Below, in pieces: positions 1 to 16,288 of a stretch of DNA of 64,000 bases; the first letter of the stretch is position 1, and every line of letters starts with the position of its first letter. The DNA is from Lepidodermella squamata. Lineage: Eukaryota > Animalia > Gastrotricha. The translations under genes and the position numbers were made by a program. Location: contig JBLDXI010000018.1 of NCBI GenBank assembly GCA_047495785.1, forward strand, positions 372,001 through 436,000. The letters run 5' to 3'. The notes below the pieces were generated by a model that had not been told where the DNA came from, ran no database searches, and worked only from the letters and a program-made list of their open reading frames with translations.

Positions 1-3000
1 CCTTCGAAAACCCGTACTCGATGGACATTCACGACTCTGAGGTCACATTCAACGGCTTTTTCGTCGATGTATCGCCCGACATCATCCCGGCGTTGTACAA
101 GGCCGGCATGCGGCAGCGGCAGAACGCCTTCTCGCCGAAAGATTGGCCAGTCAAGGGCGGAACAGCCGGCCAGTCGATGGGCAGCTACAGCCAGTTGATA
201 GTGACGGGCCACCGCAATGGCATCGTCAAATTCTGGGACGCATCCGGGGTGCAGCTTCAGATTTTGTACCTGTTGAACGTGTCCAAGTTGTTTCAAACGG
301 TCGCTGAGTCGAAGCGGCGCCTCGGTCGGGTGAACAGCAAACAGAGTACGGTTCAGTCGAGCGAATCTGCGGCGACTGACCAGGCGGCCGAGTCACCACT
401 AAATACAGAAGCTTCTTCGCCTTCTACAGCACAATCACCTGGTTCGTTAATCATATAATTTTATTTGCACATTTTCGATAACAATTTCAGGTTAAAAGTT
501 CAAATTGCCAATTTCGAATAATTTTCAGTTTTTGAAATCATTTGAGTTTTAACTTGAAAATATGCGAAAACTGAACAGAAATAGATTCTAACTAGCTGAC
601 TAAAAGATCAGTTTTCAAATTTTTGACAAATTAATTTTGAATTTTTTTAAATGAAATTTGATTGGAATGAATCTTTTCATTATCGAGAATTTTAATTTTG
701 AAATTTTGTTCAGGGCTCGAAGAATCAGCTCCTAGTACAGAGAAACACCCGCCTCTTGCGCAAACAGCGACGATCCAAACACAGAGCTCGATGGATCAAG
801 GCACCGGCGTGGTGGGCCTTAGTCAGCTCATCGCAGCCGGTACCTTCGCCGTCACCCAGGTGAAGCTGTCCGAGGACGGGCAAATGCTGCTCGTTGGCGG
901 GGCTGGTTTCGCCGTGCTGTACCGGCTCAACGAATCAGCGGCTGAGACTAATTTGGCTGTAGTCGAAGCGCGGTTTTCTTACAACAGCAATAGCCAACAA
1001 GCTGCGTCGCAAAATTCAGCTCCTAGTCAGCAGCAAGCGCAGGAAGGAGCCGCTCAAGTAGGCCAGGAATCGCAACGGCTGTCGTCGAATTCAGCCAACC
1101 CCTCGCCAGCAGCTGGGCCTCAGGTGAGAATCAATCAGCTGATCAGCGTGGGAGTTTGACATTTTTCGAAAACGCCCGAAATTTCAATGACATAATTTTT
1201 TTGAAATTTTCAAAATTTATGAAATTTCGGTTTTTTCGGAAATTGAAATGCGTTAATTTTTGGGTGATTTATTTTGAAATTGATTATTAGCTTGTGACCC
1301 GTTTTTTAGCTGCACATTTTAAAAATTAGCTGACGTGTTTTTTTCGATAGCCGAATGATGAAGTAGTCAACTAATACTTCGCTGACATGTAGACTACGCA
1401 CCCTTTGCTGCTCTCATACTATAACTGAACTCCATGAACCGCTCTTCTGTTGACGTGCCCCGCCTTTTTTGTCTTGACAGTACACTTTAAAGCATTTCCT
1501 GGATTAGCCAATCAAATCGGGCACAGATTTCGACAGCTCAGTTGACTTACATTAAATCGAATTTAAATTTAAATTTCAATAATTATCGATTTAAATTACC
1601 TTGAAATTTGGAATTGATTAACATCAAGTTTCCAGCACTCAGCTTACTTTTTGAGCGTTTTACTGCAGTATTTTGTCAATTTTTTGCGATTTTGGCTATT
1701 TTAATCCTAGGCTACTACTATTTTAGCTACTTGGTACCCTCTGGTGTGTAGAAAAAACATTTAATAGGTATTCGTTTTAGAGACTTCTGGAATTGAAAAC
1801 TCAGTCTCCAGATAGCCTCATTTAAGTATTTAATTTACGAAGTCATGAGTTGTTGAAAGCGAAAGCCGTTGATTTGATGTAACAAAACGCTTATAAATGC
1901 CGCTGTGTAATTGGCAACTGCAATAGTGACCCCGTTATGTATGTTTGACTTCGATGATGAGTTTTGTTTTGACTGCCAAATGAAGTTTTTGAAACTCCTG
2001 CACCGCCAAGCGACGAACGACTCACTGTTACCGCCACCGGCCGCGCCGGCGCCACCCGGCTCGAAACCGCCCCTGCCAGCGCCGGAACCGCCCACCGCGT
2101 TCCACCACCACTTCACGTCGCCGTTCTCGAAACGAGCCGCGTTTTCGTCGCGCACCAACTCGGCCGCCTCGTCGTCGGCCGACGGCGCGAAAACGCTGCC
2201 GGCGAGACGCGCGACGCTGCTCGAACTGCCGACCGGTCCGCCAAAGACCGGCACGGCCGAGAGCCCGATCGCCTCGTCGCCGTCGTCGCCGTCGCCGGTG
2301 GCGCCGCGGTCCTTTTCGACCTCCTTCTCACTGTCGACCGCCGATAGCCACACCAGCACGGTAGTACCTAGTAGTAGAAGTAGTACTAGTCGATTGCGGA
2401 TGGTTCATACATGTCGTTGCTTGCCCATTTTTGATACATTTTTGATCATCAACTGTCATTTTGAGTTGCCTCTCGATATTTATTTACATCAAGCCAAATG
2501 TCACGCTATCACTTCTCTCTTGTTTTTATTGGGATGACCTGTAATTTTTTGGCAAAAAAATGACACTTGAACCAACAAACCAACAACACTACCACCACCC
2601 ACAAACCACACTTGTAACGCCGGATCTGCTTCTTTCCGCCTTGCTTAATTTATTCATCATCATCTGATTGATCTATCTTGTCGATGTTGTGACTTTCACC
2701 TATTTTTGGCATTCACTCAAATTTGAACGAAAAAATTGTGCGCTTCTTGCGAGCACTTTCTAAATGTTGTCGCTTGGTTATTTTCGGGTGAGCTTCTACA
2801 TTACTATTATAGCAGAATTAATTTCGAGACGGAAAATTATTTGTTGCAAAGATTTCAACTCGAAAATCTGTCTTCGTGAGTTTTGCTATTGGCATGAGAA
2901 AATATAATTTTTTCCAAAATTTCAAAAAGAAAATTTAAGTTTGCAATTTTCAAAAAATCTTCTGTTCAAATATCAACATTAAGTTTCGAATACAAACTGT

Positions 3001-6000
3001 TTTTTTCTAACTACATTTGCCTAGGTTGGGGTTGTTAGTCCAGGGATGATTTTTTGTCAAAATCAGAAGAAACATGTCTAAATAGTTGGAAAATGTAAAA
3101 TAATCATGTCTCATGTCTCATCATATACAAATTTGAAAAAATCGCAACAATTTTCTATTGGCAAGGGTGTTTTGCTCTAGATTTAAGACAAACTTGCAGT
3201 CATCTTTCTGCGCATTGAAATAATAGTTTCGCAATGAAATCGTTGCATGAATAATTTCCGTCTCCTCGTAACTACGTGCTAATTTTTACTGAAGTTTGGG
3301 TTTTGCTTCAAATATGTTTTCTATATTTTTGATCGAGGAAGCGATTGCTGTGTTACAATTTTTTATAACCTGCAATTTTGGTAGCTTTTGTTAATGATTT
3401 TTTAATTTTTTAAATTCTAGGGTTGTCTACTACGACAAGGCCCGAGGCGGTGGAATGCCGGCTACCAGCCTGATCTAGCCGTAGCGATCGGCTGGCTGGC
3501 GCCGCCGAGCGGCAACGCGAACGACCTGCCGCAAGCTCCGCCCAGCGTCACGTGCCTGGACGTGCAGCCGGGCGCGGGCGTCATCTTCGTCGGCACCAAC
3601 TGCGGCGTGGTGGTGGTCGACGCCGTGCAGAAGGCGTGCGTCATGAAGCTGACGACGCCCGAGCTGTACGCCTGCATCGACCCGGCGACGCTGAAGAGCG
3701 TGCTCAAGAAGGCGCTCAAGGACCAGCGAGCGGCGGCCGCCGATGCCGGCGCCACCAGTGACGACGAAACACTGGCGAGTGACGTGCCGGTTTCGGCTTC
3801 TTCCGCCGGCTCGGCGCCGAACAGTGCCTCGAATAAGGTAAAATTTCGTACATACTAGTAGCCAAGATTTGAAAATAATTTTAGCCAAGCCTAACAAGTT
3901 TCGATTGTAGTTTTAGTTGGAATAAAACTGAGTAGTCTCGGGGAAAAGCGCGATTTTCATGATCGACGAATTCAAATTTCAACAATAATTTATTACTCCC
4001 AGAACCATCTAAACAACCTAATGACGGTTGATATCGAAAAATCACTGCTCTCTAAAACCGAGACTCGGAATCGATATCGAAGACGTGAAAATCGAAAAAT
4101 CACAGAATAGGGAATTAAGTCCTCAATTTAATGCTGGATCCCGAAATGCGGCTTTGACATTGAAATAATTTTTTTTAATTATCACTCTAAGATTGAATTA
4201 ATTTTCAGATTTTTGAACTGACCAAAAGAAACGTAGGTTGATTTTATAAATATTTCCCCCATTATTTTCCATTGGAATGTTTAATCTGAAATTTGAATGA
4301 TCGTCATGGAGTCGCGTTAAATTTCCCCGATTATTTCTTTAATTTTCTTGAATGATCCGAACTGACCTGAAATAATTGCGTTGAACTTGCAAAAATGTGA
4401 AAAATCGAAAAGGACATAGCGGCGTTGTTATCACCTGGGACTTCGCCGAAATCCCAACGGAAACACCATCCGATGCTCGGATCAACGACCTCGGCGAAAC
4501 GTCGGAACCTATCGCTAGCCCCAGGCCTTCTTAGCCACAAAGCTCTAGTCGAATCGCGAGGCAAATTCAACAGCGCAGAGAACAATCGAAATTCCAAGTC
4601 ATCGCCGCTTCTAATCGAAGAACCGAGTCAAGAACCGCCTAGTAGCGAACAGCTGAAATTGCCACAGCGACAGCACAAAAGTGGCTCACTTGTGCCTGAT
4701 CGAGTTGTTGAGGAGGAAGAAGAAGAGGACGAAGAGCCACGAGTCGATTCGCCGAAAATCGACTCAAATCGCAATAATTTGGGCCAAGACACGGCCGATG
4801 ACAGCGACGACCAAGTCGTGCCGGCTGTTCGAGTTCGCAAAATGTCAGTGTTTCAACGCATTTCCAGCGCGATTTCCGGCCCGCCGAAACACCACAGCCA
4901 GCACCACCGGCCGAGCATCGACGTCGGCCATTTGCTGAATCGCCGCTTCTCAGCCGCCATTCCGTCGATCAGCGGCGTGCCCAGCGATCAGTTGGCTGAA
5001 ATTCAGTTGTCGCTCGAAGAAGGCGGCTCATTCTCGAAGCAGAGCAGTGCGAATTCGGTCGACTACATCGACTTGCGGGGTAATTGCCGTGGCTGAAAAC
5101 TCGACTTTTGCACAACCTACTAGTCTTTCCGCGTGGATATTCTGGACTAAACTAACAACACTTGAGCCTTTAATTTCAACGAAATCAAAACAACGCCGCT
5201 TATTACTGCAATTTTTCAATTTCTGATTGAAAAATTTCCTCACGAAAATAATAATTGCACCCCGCTTTTTTCACTTCCTAACTTGAACTAACATTTTAAC
5301 ATTTTTATTAGAAATTGGAGTTTTCAAACGTAAGTTTGGCATTCGAAGGTGGACATTTTCAGTTTGGAAATTGAATTTGGACGATGGTATTTTTTTGAAA
5401 ATGAGGAGAATTTCGACAAAAATTTGCCAAATGTTAGATTTTTATGCGGAAAATCCATGTTTCGAGTGCCAAATTTTAATTTTTTTTATTACAATCCAGG
5501 TTTTGAATCCATTTTTTCGGAAAAATTTTCAGCTAATAATTAACTAATAGCACTCGACCTATAATTATTATAATATTACTATTGAACTAACAAGAAAACA
5601 ACATTGTGACCCTATCCTGTCGCACTTTGTCTAGGCTGGCACGGCCTCATCCCTGACCTCGTCGATGAACTCACCTCTAACAACTTCCACCACTAACACC
5701 ATCAACAGCAACAACACCACTCTGTCGGCCGCCGCCGCAGGAAACCCGCCTAGCTTAACGTCACCCGTGTCTCCCAACAGCCTGCTAGCGGCGAACCAGC
5801 AGCAAGCAGCCGCGGTGCCGCCGATGAGCCCGAACCAGCCTAACCAGCTGATCGACTCGGGCGCGTCGGCGGCGGCGGAGGGCAAACGCGACTCGAAGGG
5901 CGCCAAGTCGAAAGGTGCGGCCTTGAAGGCGGTTTTTCGTTTTGGGTCCACCAAATCGTCCAAGTCATCGCTAGAACGCGATGCTAATGAGTTGCCAACT

Positions 6001-9000
6001 AGGAGTGCCAAGTTCCACCTGCCTGTAGGCAGCCCCCCGCCCCTGTCGTCGAACAGCTTCCACGCCGGCTCCACCCTGCCGGCCGAGCACCCGAGCGCGG
6101 GTGACCCGGCCGACCAGGGTGAGGCGGGCGGCGGTGGCGGCGGCGAGGACGGGCGGGCGAGCTTGACGCGGTCGTTGTCGGTGTTGCCGAGCGGTGGCAA
6201 GCCGCTGCTAGCGGTGCCGAGTGGCCTTAGCGCGACCGTGCCGCCGTCGCCCATGTCGCCCTTGCTATCATCGCCTGGTATACATTAGATCGCGAGCGTA
6301 GTTGACCGCGCACGGCTAAGCTATAATTTTCTGTGTTTTTTTCATCCGGTGACAGTTGGTGATAGTTTGCCTATGACATTGCCTATGACTGCAAAAGCAG
6401 GCAGTGCCAGCTCGCTGTTGTTGCAAAAGCGGAAAGGTTATAATACTTCGTGATCATTTTTAGACACCCTGTGCGCTGCTCGTCATTTTTTATTGTCAAC
6501 TTGATATACTGGAAGCTAGCGCTAATTTAAATCATGCAGAATCACGCTTTTAAATTATTCAATAGTTCAATAGACTTCGGAGCATTTTAGAATTAGAGAA
6601 ATTATATTGCTTTGACGCTTGCCTCGATAGAAAAAATGGTCTCATAAATTTCGGAAATTTTTATTCTAAAATGCTCCGATCTAAACGATCGATTCCTTGG
6701 CTTCTCTGAGGAAATTTTCCAGCTTTTCAGTTCGAGAAACTTTTTCATCAGCGTTGTGAAGAATTCCAAATTTTAGTTCGAACCCGAGCTAATTTTTGTG
6801 ATACCCTTTGCTTTATTCGCTGTGAAGTCAACTTATTTCTAAACAGTCGTAAACTCATACTCGCCGGAATAGGATTAGTATTTGGCTTCCTTCATTTCAG
6901 AATTCTGTAAGACAATTGTTATTTCAAAGATCTTATTTATTTTCAGAGGTTTTATTTGATTTTTTTTACAATTGCCTTCTCATAAACTGGATATTTTTTA
7001 AAAATATGTCATATGCTAACTTGGTTTTTTTACGCCTCATTGATTTTCCGAAAGTTTAAAATTGAAGCGATAGATCAGTATTTTTAATAAAGCGCTGCTG
7101 CGTGCCTAGAATTTGATGTTTGTCAACCCGGTCAGCTTTCGCTTTGCCTACTTACTAATTATTACTAATGATGACTAACTGTGAGGCAATTGGAAGCACA
7201 CTCCGCTAGCGCACTGCTTCTGTAAAACAGCAAAATGTCCACTTACATCGGCCATCATCCATCGGTTATTTCTGCCCCCATCAAGTCATCTATCTCTCTT
7301 GTTTTCGAATTTCCGTCTCATTTGTCGCTAATTTTTTCTGCATTTTGTGTTGTTGAAAATATAGAATCAGTCTCGGACAGTGGAGTTGCGACAGGTCGCG
7401 ACTCGCCCGAGCCGGCGCCGAGCAGTGCAGCGCTTGGCCAGTCGCAGCCGCTGGTCGCCTCAGCGGACACGATCACGTGCGCGGTGTTCGCCGACTCGTT
7501 CGCGAACAAGGTGAAGCCGGACCCGAAGCAGACGATGCCGCTGGCGACGGCGCCGACGCTGTGGCTGGGCACGCAGACGGGCGCGGTGTTCATCGCCGGC
7601 GTGTCGCTGCCGCCGTCGGACGACGAGCGCGCGACGTCGCCGGTGATCGTCTCCGTGTCGCAGACTGTCTACCAGATGGCTGGGCCTGTGCTAACTCTCG
7701 CCATCCTGCCCACGTCCGAATTCATCACAGCCGAGCGGAAAGCTTCTCATCAGGTATCGTATAACAATTCTTTAAATAAGGCCTAAATTTAGGGTTCCAG
7801 CACTTAATCTGAGACAATTAGGATTTTTCGAATTTCACGGCTCTCGTAGAATCTCAATTTTTCAAATCATGCTTATAGATCTCCCTATTACATGGATTTT
7901 GCGCTTCAAGTGCCCAGTTTTTGGGTTCGGTCTCCAGAGCCGATATCGATTCCAAGTATCGATTTCACAAATACTTGTGAATTTCACAAAATCAGTGATT
8001 TTTCGATTTCAAATGTGCTGGAGCCCAATATCAATAATTTGACTACATAGTTTGAGGAATCATGTAGCTAAAAAAACCCAGGCCTAGAGAAGGCCTTGGC
8101 ATCGATTAAAACACGAAAAGGAGAAAAGGAGAGTCCGAAAATTTAGATTCAGGTGCTTATTTTAACGGTGGAACCTCATTTTCGCATGGCAATAAATTGA
8201 AAAATTAAATAAATAATTGGGAAAGATTATTTGCTATTAAGCCTCTCTTATGCGATTCTTAAATCTGCCTTGACAACAAAATTTAAATTTTTTAAATTTC
8301 CTAAATTATGTTTGAATTTCTAAATTTTTCTAAATTTTTAAACAACTTTTCCGAATTGTTCTTAGTTATAAATTATTCTAATTAATTATGTCATTGTTTC
8401 AATTTTTCTCATATTTGCGTGTGTTACTCAGCCATCTGTACCACCGGAGCCGATGCCGAAGCTGAAATCGAAGCAGAGCGCGCCGGGCGGCGGGCTGCCG
8501 GTGTACCCGGGCCAGGCGCTGCCGGACTCGAACACGCTGATGGCGCAGAACGCGGCGAGCCAGCTCGGCGTCATGGTCTCGCGCGACCAGCTCGTCGTTG
8601 TCGTGTTGCCGGCGCAAACGGTCGCGAGTCGTGCGCGGCCCCCGGCGCCGGCCGACGGCGAGCCTCGCCGCCAGCTCGCCCGTGCCGCTGTCATCCGGCC
8701 GAAGGAGAGCCACACGCAGCACTGCGTCGCGTGCCTCGCCGTCGACGGCCACGTCTCGTTCTTCAGTCTTCCGCGCCTGCGCCCGCTCTTCGAGGTCGAC
8801 CAGTGCTGCGACCCTGTTACGCCTAGGTAAAACCATAAACCATAATAATCAGATACTTTGATTTTTCACCCTCTTACAAGTATTCAGAATTAGGACAAAA
8901 CGCTGTTTCGGACTTTGAAATTCAGTGATTTTTCGAAAATTTTGAAATATTTATCACGATTGATCAAAACTGGTTAATTTTTTTTTAAATTGACGGAATC

Positions 9001-10312
9001 AAATTGGTAGGCTGGGTATCGAATACTAGAATTTGCTTCAGTCCAGTTCCAACTTTTTATTTGTCGAAAATTGTGAGATTTTGTGAAAGATTTTCCGATG
9101 TTTTCTAATTGGAAAAATTGTGAATTGAACTTCCAATTTGTTTCATTTGCAGATCTCTAAACACATTCCGCTTCTCGCACTACGGCCACGCAGTATTCTT
9201 CGACTCGCCTTCTGAAATCAACAAGCTGTCTTTCTGGGCTGAAAACAAGTACGTTTTTGTATTTTTCTTAACATTCATTCAAAATTATACCAACAAATAT
9301 CTTGTTCGTGTGATTCAAATTTGCATCAGTCTTCAGCTTAATCTAGCTCCATTCGCTTCCACTAGGTATTTGGCTTTTGGAAGTTTAGTAACTGTGACCG
9401 GGACGTGAATGTTAACTGTGACTGTGATCTGTTGATTTTCCAGATTACTATCAGTCTTCTGCTTGGGTCTGATTTATGCGCTCTCATAGTTACAGCTTAA
9501 GAATTGCTTGGGAATTTCCATATAAACGCAAAATTGTCCTTAGAGTTGATCCCATTCTCGGATTCAGATAGAAAATTTCATGAGAATTAACTTTGAATAC
9601 GCAATATTTACCGAGTTGGAAACCTTCAATTTCAGGCCCGATTGCAAAGTTACGTTACCTAAAATTTGGAAAAACTTCCTGTGAGTTGTACAATGGCTCG
9701 CCACCTTGCCACTTCCGCTTGCTCATTGCCTCCACGAGGGCCATTCAGTGTTCCTCATTAGCTTCGGGGGAGGGGGAAGAGAAAAATTGCACGAATTTCG
9801 ATGCCATTCAATTTCGAACATAAAATAAGTAATAGTGCTCAAATCTTTTAAAATATTTGAAATTTCGAAATGAAATGTAATTGTTTCTTGAATTTCCTTG
9901 CAACAGTGACAAAATGGAGTATACGCAAGGCAGCGTGTTCGTGGAGACGGTGATGCCGGAGCGGCCGAAGGCGTCCTTCCTGAAGACGCTGTTCACGTCG
10001 GCGGCGAAAGACACGGCGTTGTCGGAGCGCGAAGAGCTGTTCGGCGACCCGAATCTGAAGCCATCCGTGAACGTGGCGCGGCCGATCAGCAACAAGTTGC
10101 AGCAGCTGCAGGGCGACCTCAGCTCGGCGACGTCGTCGTCCAACTCGCCGTACGGCAAGATGTTGGAGGGCGCGAAGGAGCGCGGCGAGAAGCTGGGCCA
10201 GGTCGACGAGGCGACGCAGCGCATGATGCTGAACGCGTCCGAGTTTGCGAAGCGCGCGCACGAGATGGCGGAGAAGGAGAAAAACAAAAAGTGGTACAAC
10301 GTGTTTTCTTAG
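1..10312 (+). CDS. STXBP5: Tomosyn / syntaxin-binding protein 5 (5'-partial). Exons <1-441, 714-1123, 3421-3837, 5635-6277, 7365-7753, 8432-8826, 9153-9248, 9907-10312
   Basis: Lgl/tomosyn motifs FENPYSMDIHDS, KDWPVKGG, LIVTGHRNGIVKFWDASG, PTLWLGTQTG, SPSEINKL. C-terminal R-SNARE ERGEKLGQVDEATQRMMLNASEF...KNKKWY. All junctions are GT-AG and phase-compatible. Confidence 0.93.
1351..1362 (+). CDS. Candidate 12-nt in-frame microexon of tomosyn (PNDE)
   Basis: gctgac-gtg-T-rich-gatAG acceptor, 12 nt ccgaatgatgaa, GTAGTC donor; phase 0/0 between exons ending 1123 and starting 3421. Confidence 0.4.
1980..2360 (+). CDS. Candidate alternative internal first coding exon of tomosyn (Pro/Ser-rich, MKFLKLLHRQ...)
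   Basis: GC-rich coding-like island inside an AT-rich intron; ATG 1980, 127 codons, GTAGTA donor in phase 0 matching the acceptor at 3421. Confidence 0.6.
4029..4142 (-). repeat. Inverted partial copy of the GGGTTCCAGCAC MITE-like family
   Basis: Reverse complement resembles 7941-8012 (gatatcgattcc...cagtgatttttcgat) and ends in tgctggatccc. Confidence 0.5.
4473..5079 (+). CDS. Second candidate alternative internal first coding exon of tomosyn (MLGSTTSAKRR...)
   Basis: Open, coding-like frame of about 200 codons in an intron; phase-1 donor (cggg|gtaatt) compatible with the phase-1 acceptor at 7365. Confidence 0.5.
6577..6679. repeat. Short foldback element with perfect 17-bp inverted repeats (MITE-like)
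   Basis: tcggagcattttagaat (6577-6593) and attctaaaatgctccga (6663-6679) are exact reverse complements. Confidence 0.7.
7792..8026. mobile_element. Non-autonomous DNA transposon (MITE-like), about 235 bp
   Basis: TIR-like GGGTTCCAGCAC (7792-7803) / GTGCTGGAGCCC (8015-8026); 5' part shared with 63359-63470. Confidence 0.6.
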
Positions 10313-12784
10313 CCTACCTAAACGACTTGAACGAATTGAATGATCACATCGCCAAGTGCCTGTTTCTCCGGTGTCTGTGCCACTGTTAACTATACGACTA
10401 CGACTACTACGACAAAAATGATAGCGTTTTAATTATTATTATGCATTCCTTTTAATTGTTAAAAGAAATAACTACTACTTATATGTGGAAGAAGCGATTC
10501 TGTGCAATTTTTCTTCGTGTCGCAGCACTTCAATCATTTTTTGTACTGATGTTTGGTCGTCGATCGAATATTTTATTGTTATTTTACCTGCATTGCCTGC
10601 TTTTTTATGACAAACCTGCCTGCCTACCGATGTTATTATTATTATTGCTAAACCACTACCTATTCTACTAAAAATCGAAAAAAATCGAAGTTCATGACGT
10701 GTCTTCATAAATGTTGACCAGAAATAACCTATTTATTTACGTGTGTTATCGCATTATTTTCTGGAAAAATTGACAAAAATTATATTATTATATTTATTAT
10801 ATAAATATTTTTTGAGAAGAAAAATTCACCAGTGAAGAAGAGAAAGAAACAACGCATCATTTTTTTGCGGATATTTTGAAAGCGAGAGAGAGAGAGAGCG
10901 AGTCGGAATATTATCATCGATTGTGTATTCATGTTATATTCGTATATACTATTCTCTACTTGTTATACCAACCTTATTACATACCCGTCTACCTTCACCG
11001 AACGCGGCTACGCGAAAACGAACGAGCAGGATGAGGATGATGATGATATACCGTACCAAACCAACCAATGTCATTATTATTTATTTTGAAAATATGGCTG
11101 AAATAAAAATAAAAAAGCAACGAGGGAATATATTGCCAATTTTCTCTTTTCACATTTTTAGAGTTCTAAATAGCAGGTGACGAATTGGAGAATTTTACCA
11201 ATATTTTGGTTGTTTTTCGGAATTACTACCGCAACAAATTGCTGGGACTTGGGGCAATTTTTTCGTGACCTTACTTTTCATTCATTTCCGCCTACTGTGC
11301 GATTATTATAGTGGCCAGTGTTAAATGAATGAGGTCACATGGCTACGCCTTGGGTCATGCGGCCACGTGCTGCAAGTAATAATATGAAAAAACGCTTTTA
11401 TTGCTTTCTTATATGTGACCTATCTGTCAGTGTGTGCTCATCAATTCGGGTTAAAAACGACGTCGTTTTAAGCTTAACATGTTACGAAGGGAACTGCTTG
11501 TGGGCGGAAAGATCAAACGAAAAATAAGAGCGAAACGCGATAAGAGCAACGGCTAAAGTTAAGTTATTCAATCAGGGTCAATTATAACCAGCGTGAGTTA
11601 ACCAGCGTGCTTATCTGGTTATGTTCTAATATCATTGCTCGATTCTCATTGCCCTTATTTCGCTTGCTCTTTTCGCACACAACAGGAAACTGCGTACACG
11701 AAAACAGCAGATAACCTGTATAGAATGAATCGAGCTATCATTAATCATTGTAGAATCGATGGCGGCCTTTTAGTTTCATTTTTCGTTGGATTCGAAGAGT
11801 CGACTTCTATTATTTCTATTATTGGACCCAACGAAAGCTTGAGTTCGATTGTTACAATCAGAAACATTTCATGAGTTTTCTTGAGAAATTTCATTTTTCA
11901 TTTCTGATCTTTGTTTTCAGATGTTTCCATAAGTAGAGTTTCGATAACAAAACACGCTTGAAGGCTTCAATTGCATTTGATTATTATTTATCGACGTTTC
12001 AACGCTTTCTACGCTTTCTCGCGGTTTTATATAACCAATAATATAATGTCCTCTCTGCTCTTCTCAGTTTGCTCAGTTTACTCATTTTAAATTGAATTTT
12101 TTCATTTCTATTTTGAACTTCGCCTCATTCTTTTGCTTTGCCAACTGTTGAATAGTGCGCGCGTTTTATGCGTGAACCAAATGGCCCATTACACTAAAAA
12201 ATTCACCTGAATCTTTAATACGAGAGAGAGAGCCATATACCTACGGCGTTTCGTTGTAATTTCACGCATCATCTACTGCGCGTATCCCATCATACAAGCA
12301 ATAAGCAAAAAACACGCAGGCATAGTAGCCGTTGAATAGCTACTACCTACTACTACGGCTGGTTGTCGACTCGAAAAATTCGAGCACGATGAAAACAAGC
12401 CTGTATAAAAATCTAGTCACATGCCCAGGTGTTATATACCTTGGAATAGCCGTTGTTTTGGCGGCCATTATTAACCTGGCATTTTTTACCTGGTCACCCT
12501 GCATCATCTCAAATTTGAGTAATAATTCAATTGGTAATCACAAAATTTAATTTTTTAATTATTTTAAGGTGAATGAATGAGAAAATGACGTCAAAAACTA
12601 CAACATATTCTTGTTCTGAATGTAGTAACACGTGTGTAGTAGAAAAATGCTTATCAGCTTGGCTGCATGTGCGTGTTTGCTCTCAGCTCAAAGTGCTTTT
12701 TACGCATAATATTTATTTACTCGACCTACCTATATACATAATATCTATCAACATAGGCTGCGCATTTCGCTATATTTTTTACAC

Positions 12785-15399
12785 ATGGAAAAAGAACCTG
12801 CTGATGATAATACCAATGGAAATCCGTTTGCGGGCGAGGAAGAAAACGAACCAGATACGCCAACTTCAGGTAGGCAATGAATTTGAACAGAAAAATTGCA
12901 TGAAGCTTGTCTTAGGATGTTTAGGCTGTTCGATTTCATCGAATAAAAAAGACGATGAAGAAAAGGCGGTGCTGACTAAAAAATCGCCTCCACCTCGACC
13001 TCCTCCGCCGCGCCCTCCGCCTCCCGTCAGCCCACCCGTCGCCTCAGTCACCGATACCAGCAATCCCTTCGAAGAAGAGGAAGATTTCGAATTGGTTGAA
13101 GTTGCCGAGGAGGCACTGCCAGAAGACGACGAGAAGAATCCTTTCAAAGAGCCTGAAAATCCGTTCCTAGACGAGGATTGCGATGATGAGAATCCGTTCG
13201 AGTCATCAGATCCGGCTGTGGATCCGCAGGTCAACCGGTCACCGTTACCTAGTCGTAGTGATAACAATAATAAGGAAACTACCCCGTCGTCATCAGCTGC
13301 CTCTCCTCCAGCTGCTGCTGCTACGCCGGCTTCGTTAGCTGAACCGAGCAGGTCGGCATCGGAGACATCGCCCCTACCGTCGCCCAAGCTGACTAAAAGC
13401 CACTCGGCTAAGGCGGGGTTTTTCAAAATTTTCCGGAAAAGCGGCTCTTCATCTTCGTCGTCGAAAAAGGTAACAATATGCATCATTTTTTAATTGCAAA
13501 ATTTAGTAGGTTAATTAAAATTCAGATCAAGCATTTGAAACCCCATTAGATTCTATTATTTTTCTATCAATAATTGCTTTAAAAATGACTCGAAATTTAT
13601 ATGAATTTAACGAATTATTTCATGGGATTTCTTAGACATTTTTAACCTGACGGTTTACCAAATTTTTCCACTTGTTACATGAAATCAAGAAACATTTTTT
13701 GAATTAGATTTTACTTTAGGCAAGTGAAAGATGTCATTTGTCAACTTTTTTCCTGTCGATACCGCTAATAATAATCGAATATTAACTCGTAAGACTAGCG
13801 TTAAAATTAACATTTCGAAATTCCAATTTTTCGCTGGAACCCAATTGGAATCCTGATGGCAACGAGGTTCGTTTCAATAAAAAGCATTTCATTGGTCTTG
13901 AAAGTGGCATCATTATCATACGATAACAAAATGCGTTAGATCCCCAATTTTTCTCATGTCTTATAGGCGATTTGGTAGATAATACCTAAATACACCATTT
14001 AGCTGTAATCTCCAGCTTATAACTTATCAGTTGATGAAAGATCATGTTAACAAGAAGGGTTGCTAATCTGTAGCCATTTACGACAGTTGGGTGGGGGGTT
14101 GAGATGAATAACCAGACAATGAATCAGGATGAGCTGCGATGATTCGCGAGATAAGGTTAGCAATACAATTTAAGAAGTGAAGGTTCCATTTCAAATTGGG
14201 CGATTTCCGACGACAGCGAGCGGGTGTGTGATGAAGCAACCGCTTCTTATAGTCTGTCTAAGTAACTTGATCGAGTGGCTGCAAGTCCTTCAAGCCACGC
14301 AGCGCAAGATTTCAGAGCTTTTTCTTCACCAGCTAGGCGACAAATCGATTATCCTGTGGCAAATAGCTTAGCTTGATTATTAAATGCGGTGAACGATTCC
14401 GGGGAGCACATTTCATAGCACGTCATGAGGCTGACTGCTGACTATGAGAACAGTGCGGCCAGTCTCGTCCGTGGCAACGAGGCAGGCGCCTTTATTCGTT
14501 AGCAGCGTATCCATGTCATATTGATTTGCTACGGTTGTTTCTATCCATGTAATGTCTCCATCAATATCCCGATCCAGTCATTTGAAAGTGGCATTCTTCC
14601 CTTTAAGAACCACCGAGAAAACAAGCGACTTGTCAGTATCTAAGGCCGTGGTTTCGATCCAACAATGTCACGATCAATATCCGAATAATATTCGTCACTA
14701 TCTGTTGCCCATCTGTGGTTGATTTTGACTCCTGGGCGTGCGTCCCTGGGTCCCGCCTGGCCTCTGTTTTGTTCGTTTCTCCTCGCATTCGAGACAATTT
14801 ACTCGACTTATCAGGATTATTCATTGATTAAAGGAGCCTAGTAGAAACAACTCAGGAAAACGTTTGAAAAGGGAGAAAAAGCAAGTCGCTTCTGAAACAA
14901 AAATGTTGTACTAAATTTCATAGTTTACTTTATCTCGTTGATGTCTCGATTAATTGTAATTTCCTCTTGTAATTTTTAGGAACAGCCCGCTCGGCCCTCG
15001 ACACCACCCCCGGCGCCTCCTGAAACAGTGCCCCAACCCCGTACAACAACAACGACTACTCGTCCCTCATCCTCAGCTGCCCACACCGCTCCAGCGTCGA
15101 CGTCAAGCGGTCCCATCGAATTCGACCCGTCCCGATACCGGTCGCCCCTCGCCCAACTCCTGCACGAACGCTACGGCATACAGCCGACGACGAAGCCGGC
15201 GCACGAAGTGGCGGCAGCGCGGCAGGCCTCTGCGCAGAGTGCCATGCACAAAATGGTGGCTCAGGCGCACGAACGCGGCGAACGGCTGGGCGAACTCGAA
15301 GACTCGAGCGCGAGACTGCGCAACTCGGCCGAGCAGTTCGGCTCATCGGCGAAAGCACTCTCTGATCATTATAAAAACAAGAAATGGTGGCAATTATAG
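12785..15399 (+). CDS. NPF-repeat, proline-rich protein with C-terminal tomosyn-type soluble R-SNARE (about 350 aa). Exons 12785-12869, 12916 (or 12925)-13469, 14980-15399
   Basis: Phase-compatible GT-AG junctions; five NPF motifs; PPPRPPPPRPPPP; C-terminus AHERGERLGELEDSSARLRNSAEQFGSSAKALSDHYKNKKWWQL is a tomosyn-type R-SNARE with no TM segment; AATAAA at about 15516. Confidence 0.82.
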
Positions 15400-16288
15400 C
15401 GATAAATATACCTGCTGATTTATTGATTTTATTATAATATCATATTATTATTAAAACGACCGCATTTCGATCAAACTTTTTCAGTGGTACACAGGACTTT
15501 CATTGCAAGATAAAATAATAAAGTGATTATTATTCATCAATCATTGTTGTTCATTTAATCAATTCAAACCGAGTTAGGATAACGCCTTACTGATAGGCTT
15601 TACGATGGAGCCTTACAATTCAACCTGGACATTGTTGGCAGATTAACGGTCATCGGTGACACGGCGTGGAAAATTCAATAAACAGCACGAACAATTAGTC
15701 ATTATCACAGGCATACTTTATTATCCACTGACTCACGAGAAAGCTGATTCATCAGCGGCCCACGACAGAATACTCGTTTCGTTGTTTGGTGATACAACGG
15801 TGCAAGTCTTTCTCCGGTTTCTCCTGCTTGGCGATTCCATCTAGAAATCGTTACGATGTACACATTGGCGATGTTTCCGGAATTTTCGGCGGCGAATCGG
15901 ATAGATCCACGCAAAATGACTGAGATTGTCCATCGTTTTAGGTTAGCTGTTTCCCAAGAAATTTGTCGGGAATGTTGCAACCACTGATTCTGGGTGATAT
16001 TCATTGTTCGATGTGCATGCACCTATTATTCTTCGTTTCTGGAACATCTGATTTTCGCTTCCATACCTATGCGGTCGATTAAATCGATTTAATTTCTGCG
16101 AGGCATTACACGGAGAAACATACTAATGATTACTATATAACCAAGTGTTGTTAAGGGTTGTACTCCAACGCACTCAACGTTGTTCACCAATTCATTCATG
16201 AGTGCGTGAACAACAATTCAACAGTACAATGAAGCAACAATTCTTACAATTTTACCTGCATGTTGTGTAGCAATGCTGGCTCGACATC

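Follow-up and report, generated by a model that had tools for sequence, protein, structure and literature searches.

Cells possess built-in competitors of the vesicle SNAREs in the form of anchorless R-SNAREs, tomosyn and amisyn among them, and how these are recruited to the membranes where they act is still debated. In a 64,000-nucleotide stretch of DNA from the gastrotrich Lepidodermella squamata (GenBank assembly GCA_047495785.1, contig JBLDXI010000018.1, positions 372,001 to 436,000 of the forward strand; hereafter the window, whose own numbering we use throughout), a reading made from the sequence alone had pointed to a small gene at 12785..15399 that would join five NPF motifs and a proline-rich segment to an R-SNARE helix. 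We refer to it as the NPF-SNARE gene. Is it a gene in its own right, to which SNAREs does its helix belong, and what might its tail do? Small anchorless regulatory R-SNAREs are known; what appears to be new is a disordered tail, carrying NPF and polyproline motifs, that is joined to one.

The gene has three exons, all on the + strand. Exon 1 (12785..12869) holds the start codon and the first NPF motif (NPFAGEEE, nucleotides 12821-12844) and encodes only 28 residues. Exon 2 (12916..13469), defined by its translation, AlphaFold2, an empty Pfam search and its cover by contigs of the public sequencing run X1, encodes a disordered region. Exon 3 (14980..15399) carries a Pro/Thr-rich linker, a short conserved helix, the R-SNARE motif and the stop codon. 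In the rebuilt translation these 85, 554 and 420 nucleotides give an uninterrupted frame of 352 residues that closes with TAG at 15397-15399, and the three-exon model of about 350 residues proposed earlier was borne out, free of internal stops and with GT..AG at both introns. The ATG at 12785 is the first in-frame ATG past an in-frame stop at 12707, and no other in-frame ATG occurs before residue 302. For all that follows, the exons were searched and folded one by one and not as the whole spliced protein.

Both introns are removed in cDNA-like contigs of X1, which skip exactly 12870-12915 at a depth of 50 and 13470-14979 at a depth of 95. Intron 1 (12870..12915, + strand, 46 nucleotides) is recorded as joint 12867>12914, cut +2, and intron 2 (13470..14979, + strand, 1510 nucleotides) as joint 13467>14978, cut +2, so that the splice joints fall at 12869|12916 and 13469|14980 and tie the NPF exons to the R-SNARE exon. 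The X1 contig that contains the joint between exons 2 and 3 stops at 15522, at the end of an AATAAA (15517-15522), which gives a 3' untranslated region (3'UTR) of 15400..15522 on the + strand. Across the locus the X1 depth follows the gene, the exons being deep and the intergenic DNA at or near zero, and the loose end of one X1 contig reads AAGCAGTGGTATCAACGCA, which we take to be the SMART cDNA adapter. Exon depth is similar to or above that of the tomosyn 3' end, read contigs being unable to show transcript ends or expression levels.

Such joints bear on whether tomosyn could use these as 3' exons by alternative splicing or read through into them, with the R-SNARE exon serving as an alternative tomosyn tail. 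We consider this very improbable. The two units do lie on the same strand about 2.5 kb apart, an AG stands 28 nucleotides upstream of the ATG, and the RNA contigs stop short of the 5' end; tomosyn, however, possesses a stop codon, an R-SNARE and a 3'UTR of its own, and X1 contigs cover its end and 3'UTR as far as 11128. Between that 3'UTR and exon 1 the X1 depth is zero in two bins (11276-11472 and 12064-12260), and the in-frame stop at 12707 precedes the ATG. Well-supported joints connect the R-SNARE exon to the NPF exon, and among the joints listed for the reads none links a tomosyn exon to the NPF-SNARE gene. The NPF-SNARE gene is therefore an independent, expressed three-exon gene, and the outcome that the sequence-only reading had named against itself, an exon 14980-15399 spliced to tomosyn alone or absent from transcripts of the NPF exons, failed, as the joints tie that exon to the NPF exons. 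X1 also contains low-depth contigs (4-25) within intron 2 (13470-14979) and in intergenic DNA, with many joints of the 'opposite strands' kind. The likeliest source of these is DNA carried over from the genome, or artefacts of the library, and not an intronic transcript.

What kind of SNARE does exon 3 encode? Pfam Synaptobrevin (PF00957) matches exon-3 residues 85-137 with E=8e-8 and 32.4 bits, above the cut-off of 26.4. The motif, from layer -7 to layer +8, lies at 15202..15360 on the + strand, and its layer residues are H A Q A M M A R L L S L A F A L. The arginine at its centre, Arg312 (15274-15276), aligns with the 0-layer Arg of solved VAMP2 and VAMP4 chains and is invariant across our SNARE alignment, and layers +1 to +8 (L L S L A F A L) are intact, the C-terminal, membrane-proximal half being canonical. 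AlphaFold2 predicted one long helix over exon-3 residues 74-133, with a predicted local distance difference test (pLDDT) score averaging 81-96 in ten-residue blocks over residues 81-130, preceded by a short helix at exon-3 residues 56-65. Upstream of the R-SNARE motif the linker contains the short conserved helix YRSPLAQLLHERYGI (15136..15180, + strand; residues 266-280), to which we return below.

The C-terminal tail SDHYKNKKWWQL (15361..15396, + strand) is basic and aromatic and resembles a juxtamembrane segment, and no transmembrane segment comes after it; the protein ends with KNKKWWQL and then the stop. The highest 19-residue Kyte-Doolittle mean anywhere in the protein is 0.37, and the protein therefore has no transmembrane segment. 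A profile of animal tomosyn tails matches residues 290-352 at 73 bits. Taken together, the Pfam match, the tomosyn-tail profile, the KNKKWWQL end and the low hydropathy agree with the earlier description of a tomosyn-type R-SNARE without a transmembrane segment, and on these features the helix is a tomosyn-type (regulatory) R-SNARE lacking a membrane anchor.

The N-terminal two-thirds of the protein are intrinsically disordered. AlphaFold2 gave exon 2 no secondary structure (predicted template modelling score, pTM, 0.15) and Pfam found no domain in it, in keeping with the earlier statement that the protein has neither a WD40 propeller nor a PH domain, since neither method gives a folded N-terminal domain. 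Within this region we observed five NPF tripeptides, at residues 13, 78, 103, 110 and 121, in the contexts NPFAGEEE, NPFEEEED, NPFKEPE, NPFLDED and NPFESSD; the last four are encoded in exon 2, on the + strand, at 13062-13085, 13137-13160, 13158-13181 and 13191-13214. All five fall between residues 13 and 123, in sequence without predicted structure. When the N-terminal 213 residues were shuffled 200,000 times, the mean number of NPFs was 0.09 and the maximum 3, and no shuffle reached five. The five NPF-acidic motifs reported earlier are thus present, and far more numerous than in the shuffles, with the qualification that acidic residues follow the NPF in NPFAGEEE, NPFEEEED, NPFLDED and NPFESSD and only partly in NPFKEPE. 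All EH domains bind NPF, and those of the EHD family prefer it with acidic flanks (PMC13282721).

The same region is strongly acidic, with a net charge of -28 over residues 1-135. Its polyproline/Arg stretch (12984-13037), SPPPRPPPPRPPPPVSPP, occupies residues 52-69, and RPPPPRP at residue 56 fits the class I SH3 consensus RxxPxxP. The proline-rich segment put forward earlier as an SH3 ligand was accordingly found, although the PxxPxR form assigned to it does not literally occur and RxxPxxP stands in its place. Exon 2 further encodes CLGC (12918-12929), a Ser/Pro/Ala-rich stretch and KAGFFKIFRK (13410-13439). We tried the last of these (residues 194-203) as a counterpart of the KQGFFKNLF box that precedes the tail in tomosyn; it was the best site for a 15-column matrix, but 18% of shuffles scored equally, and we rejected it. 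Two side observations concern the tail. The DNA encoding GNPFAGEE (12817-12840) and that encoding ENPFLDED (13154-13177) are 75% identical over 24 nucleotides, a weak hint from the sequence that NPF units may have arisen by internal duplication. The sequence SGCLGCS lies near the N-terminus, and the related protein P0003, introduced below, begins with MKAFRRFIKWVGMC, a basic-hydrophobic stretch with Cys; that these are membrane anchors of the palmitoylation type is speculation.

Has a protein of this build been seen elsewhere? We compared exon 3 with 1.84 billion protein representatives by exhaustive phmmer, which gave 96 matches at E<1e-3 and none below 1e-10. Almost all are anchorless tomosyn-type tails ending in [KR]KW[WY]Q[LFM], and they include tomosyn-length proteins, fragments and short proteins from algae listed in UniRef as 'V-SNARE coiled-coil homology domain-containing'; P0069 is the one match, of those inspected in full, to end in a brevin-like transmembrane segment. 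None of the 96 contains more than one NPF. Word-index protein searches with exon 3 alone, and with the exon 2 region within a longer open reading frame (ORF; length about 170-535 residues), gave nothing new, and a word-index search with a profile of P0003 and exon 3 returned only P0003. Patterns of the linker helix drew 114 matches from JGI metagenome contigs, of which tblastn confirmed 0. In full-text literature searches that paired NPF with R-SNARE, tomosyn or amisyn, or with both the EH domain and the SNARE motif, no described protein so built came up, and the earlier remark that the architecture was unfamiliar holds across the proteins and literature searched.

The one relative that stands out is P0003, a protein of 189 residues encoded by a single exon on an ENA metagenome contig from a compact, animal-like genome (L001 10001-10570, also L002). 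It shares with the window protein the linker helix YRSPLAQ[LI]L-E-[RK]YGI, 80% identical over 15 residues (L001 10322-10366), and its SNARE is 50% identical over 48 residues, the overall range being 44-50%. P0003 is on this evidence a clear orthologue, and the only one found. Its gene is flanked by those for adenylate kinase and RNA polymerase II Rpb2, and not by tomosyn. As judged from P0003, which lacks them, the NPFs are not a conserved feature of the family.

Two further groups appeared among the matches. P0047, P0053 and P0054 (with the fragment P0045) are metagenome proteins of 532-584 residues whose N-terminus is acidic and whose C-terminus is a tomosyn-type R-SNARE without an anchor, ending in KNKKWYQL; their central region is unrelated to tomosyn and looks by eye like ankyrin repeats, and they would represent another undescribed architecture built on a tomosyn-type SNARE. 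P0005, P0008, P0033, P0046 and P0068 are algal proteins of 199-308 residues (Prototheca and Tetraselmis by name, and look-alikes) with an anchorless tomosyn-type R-SNARE. Before it they conserve R-x-x-x-[EQ]IK-x-x-YG, which recalls the HERYG helix of the window protein. Some of these short algal proteins may be fragments of long tomosyn-like proteins.

Is the gene under constraint? Variation between X1 and X2, the latter a genomic run, speaks to this, the two being near-identical strains. The exon indels are of 6, 3 and 3 nucleotides and all lie within low-complexity runs, while the nine listed intron indels, mostly out of frame, comprise five of 1 nucleotide, one of 7, one of 2 and two of 3. 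The listed exon substitutions are synonymous in four of six cases, and the listed variants spare the four NPFs that were checked, the second NPF lying outside the check. In-frame exon indels together with mostly synonymous substitutions are the mark of a protein-coding region held under constraint. From the low-complexity tail and the near lack of relatives in public data one might suspect a duplicate in decay, or transcriptional noise that serves no function. We find this scarcely credible and the least probable of the alternatives considered, as the frame of 352 codons is intact over three exons, the exon indels keep it, the substitutions are mostly silent, the exon depth at least resembles that of the tomosyn 3' end, SNARE layers 0 to +8 are kept, and an orthologue at 44-50% identity sits on the contig of another organism.

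What, then, might the protein do? We consider it somewhat probable that it is a fusion-incompetent R-SNARE competitor, brought by EH- and SH3-domain proteins to endocytic or recycling membranes; that it enters SNARE complexes, that it binds EH and SH3 domains and where it acts are inferred from motifs. The C-terminal 65 residues would act as an R-helix, forming a four-helix bundle with a syntaxin and a partner of the SNAP-25 type. With its R-helix untied to any vesicle, that bundle would be unable to drive fusion, so that the protein would compete with synaptobrevin-type v-SNAREs in the manner of tomosyn, amisyn and TOM-1B. The NPFs and the polyproline/Arg stretch are putative ligands for EH domains (EHD/RME-1, Eps15, intersectin) and SH3 domains, through which the tail would most likely gather the decoy SNARE on membranes of endocytosis or recycling, or hand SNARE-bound Q-SNAREs to that machinery. 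The coupling of EHD/SH3 machinery to SNARE inhibition proposed from the sequence at the outset would in this sense be a reasonable deduction from the motifs.

If this is true, SNARE inhibition or sorting would be linked directly to endocytic recycling, for which the interaction of the SNAP29 NPF with EHD1 is so far the main precedent. Amisyn is targeted by a lipid-binding PH domain and tomosyn by its propellers; an array of EH/SH3 motifs would be a third way. A bolder proposal, which we advance tentatively and regard as doubtful, is that small decoy R-SNAREs evolved independently a third time in this protein, as a class next to amisyn and TOM-1B that is targeted entirely by EH/SH3 motifs: an endocytic or recycling adaptor whose R-SNARE helix captures syntaxin/SNAP-25 acceptor complexes. 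SNARE availability would then be physically coupled to the EHD/Eps15/intersectin machinery, and the protein and its NPF-less orthologue P0003 would make up an undescribed gene family of small invertebrates, defined by a linker helix plus an anchorless R-SNARE.

Several points weigh against a recruited competitor. P0003 lacks the NPFs, the polyproline stretch and the KKWW tail alike, ending instead with ...ANKYS; the motif-rich tail is for that reason lineage-specific, and it could be functionally neutral. The practical weight of the finding is limited on the same account, P0003 being the one orthologue to hand. Within the SNARE motif the N-terminal layers (H, A, Q, A, M, M, A) are small or polar, and the stability of a SNARE complex is therefore uncertain. 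The AlphaFold2 models were built from single sequences, a mode in which low confidence is common in any case. The RNA label of X1 is a guess, to which the adapter, the spliced contigs and the pattern of depth lend support, and the X1 junction contig appears to begin near 12808, about 23 nucleotides past the ATG, which places the ATG and the 5' end outside the RNA cover.

The first of these points would suit a plain mini-tomosyn, in which the short helix and anchorless R-SNARE compete with v-SNAREs and the motifs, with no part in EH/SH3 recruitment, arise incidentally in a tail that is acidic, of low complexity and quick to evolve. P0003 has only the linker helix and SNARE in common with the window protein and lacks every NPF, the in-frame indels in Ser/Ala/Thr runs indicate a plastic tail, and the weak similarity of two NPF units (75% over 24 nucleotides) hints at a recent internal duplication. 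We nevertheless think it rather unlikely that the motifs are incidental, because five NPFs where 0.09 are expected lie far beyond what composition would give. Four of the five have the acidic flanks that EHD proteins prefer, one of them with the NPFEEEE core of the validated MICAL-L1 site (PMC13282721). The variants between X1 and X2 also spare the four NPFs checked, though the strains are near-identical.

The make-up of the tail, disordered, charged at -28 over residues 1-135, with multiple NPFs and an SH3 ligand, is that of an endocytic adaptor. CALM, epsin and stonin are adaptors for vesicle proteins, and papers on epsin, CALM/AP180 and stonin mention SNARE motifs as well as NPF motifs, as judged by titles and term counts. 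By analogy the protein could be a sorting adaptor and no inhibitor, its R-SNARE helix gripping syntaxin/SNAP-25-type acceptors while the tail links them to Eps15, intersectin or EHD for the retrieval or recycling of Q-SNAREs. The 352-residue protein, however, contains no clathrin-box, DPF/W or FxDxF motif, and the tail is not conserved in P0003; we judge this reading improbable and prefer that of a recruited competitor.

How did the gene come to lie behind tomosyn? The upstream gene occupies 3..10312 on the + strand, the window beginning inside it, and its last coding stretch and R-SNARE lie in the ORF 9881-10312. Pfam found nothing on the separate tomosyn ORF pieces, and its Synaptobrevin match on 9881-10309 is weak; the gene is identified as tomosyn by the colinearity of tblastn matches, those of three tomosyn-length proteins running in order over 3-10303 on the + strand. 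It is colinear with residues 376-1399 of a 1399-residue protein from the mollusc Nucella lapillus, which NCBI names only 'hypothetical protein' and which has the length of tomosyn and a tomosyn-type tail. This colinearity upholds the earlier placement of the NPF-SNARE gene directly downstream of tomosyn. In the spacer between the two genes the X2 depth rises from about 62 to 600-1100 at 11473-11866, and at 11644-11687 many contigs break off, leaving loose ends; this short high-copy repeat is probably a fragment of a mobile element. Scans of the locus for Rfam families, tRNAs and repeats returned nothing relevant.

It had been proposed that the NPF-SNARE gene arose by partial duplication of the last exon of its neighbour. 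Our analysis leaves this plausible only. The two SNARE motifs in the window are 37% identical over 49 residues (E=1e-11), whereas the NPF-SNARE helix is 54-57% identical, depending on the aligner, to the tail of the tomosyn-like protein of Nucella lapillus, and homology to tomosyn is not demonstrable beyond the SNARE. The resident tomosyn R-SNARE is itself unusually divergent: its branch in the SNARE tree measures 1.56, no other tail exceeds 45% identity to it, and it ends in KNKKWYNVFS where KKWYQL is usual. A tree of the SNAREs (34 rows, 56 columns) has an unresolved backbone, the nearest sequence to the NPF-SNARE by path being P0003; the resident tomosyn sits on a long branch, and we rejected the phylogeny as a pointer to the donor. 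An old tandem partial duplication of tomosyn is possible and a fair hypothesis, since the SNARE is clearly of the tomosyn type and the gene lies directly behind tomosyn on the same strand. The 37% identity to the neighbour and the position of the orthologue away from tomosyn imply that any duplication happened long ago; that the two genes adjoin may be a leftover of it or mere chance.

How does the protein compare with known systems? With tomosyn (STXBP5 / TOM-1) it shares ERGE[KR]L around the 0-layer Arg, the lack of an anchor and the ending K-x-KKW[WY]Q[LF]. Tomosyn, however, is a protein of 1100-1500 residues with a double WD40 propeller, whereas this one has 352 residues, no propeller, a disordered N-terminus with NPF and proline motifs, and a gene of its own. 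The tomosyn tail motif DREELFGE-SGK is also missing here, with YRSPLAQLLHERYGI in its place. A second known system is TOM-1B of C. elegans, a small protein without WD40 repeats that is essentially the tomosyn R-SNARE and is genetically inhibitory (10.1101/2022.06.16.496459). Both are small proteins built on a tomosyn-type R-SNARE without WD40 repeats. TOM-1B is made from the tomosyn gene, by means of an intronic alternative 5' exon spliced to the tomosyn SNARE exons, and no NPF tail has been described for it; the NPF-SNARE gene has its own SNARE exon (14980-15399), past the tomosyn stop codon and 3'UTR, and its own upstream exons and transcript. Stand-alone genes for tomosyn-type SNAREs thus exist outside vertebrates.

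The NPF motifs themselves have two kinds of precedent. MICAL-L1, rabenosyn-5 and Rab11-FIP2 likewise carry NPF followed by an acidic cluster, and the EHD1-binding site of MICAL-L1, NPFEEEEED (PMC13282721, a 2026 review of EHD proteins), has the core NPFEEEE in common with NPFEEEED here. Unlike the window protein, these have no SNARE helix, and they show no homology to it beyond the motifs. SNAP29 is an anchorless SNARE that binds the EH domain of EHD1 through an NPF (PMC13282721), and so combines the same two elements. It differs in being a Qbc-SNARE, with two Q-SNARE helices and a single NPF as opposed to one R-SNARE helix and five NPFs. SNAP29 takes part in fusion.

A further analogue is amisyn (STXBP6), a small, soluble and anchorless protein with a C-terminal tomosyn/VAMP-like coiled coil that competes with synaptobrevin-2 and forms fusion-incompetent complexes (PMC9715400). 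The two share their size class, solubility and anchorless C-terminal coiled coil and differ at the N-terminus, where amisyn has a PH domain and the window protein is disordered, with no PH domain found by Pfam or AlphaFold2. The amisyn PH domain reportedly binds PI(4,5)P2 (Kondratiuk et al. 2020), and the title of that report calls amisyn vertebrate-specific. Among the matches at E<1e-3 that we inspected in full there was no amisyn-like protein of about the length of amisyn, the top matches being tomosyn tails; the NPF-SNARE protein is set apart from amisyn on these grounds. The NPF-SNARE gene looks like an independent and analogous solution to that of amisyn, one in which targeting by linear motifs replaces a lipid-binding domain.

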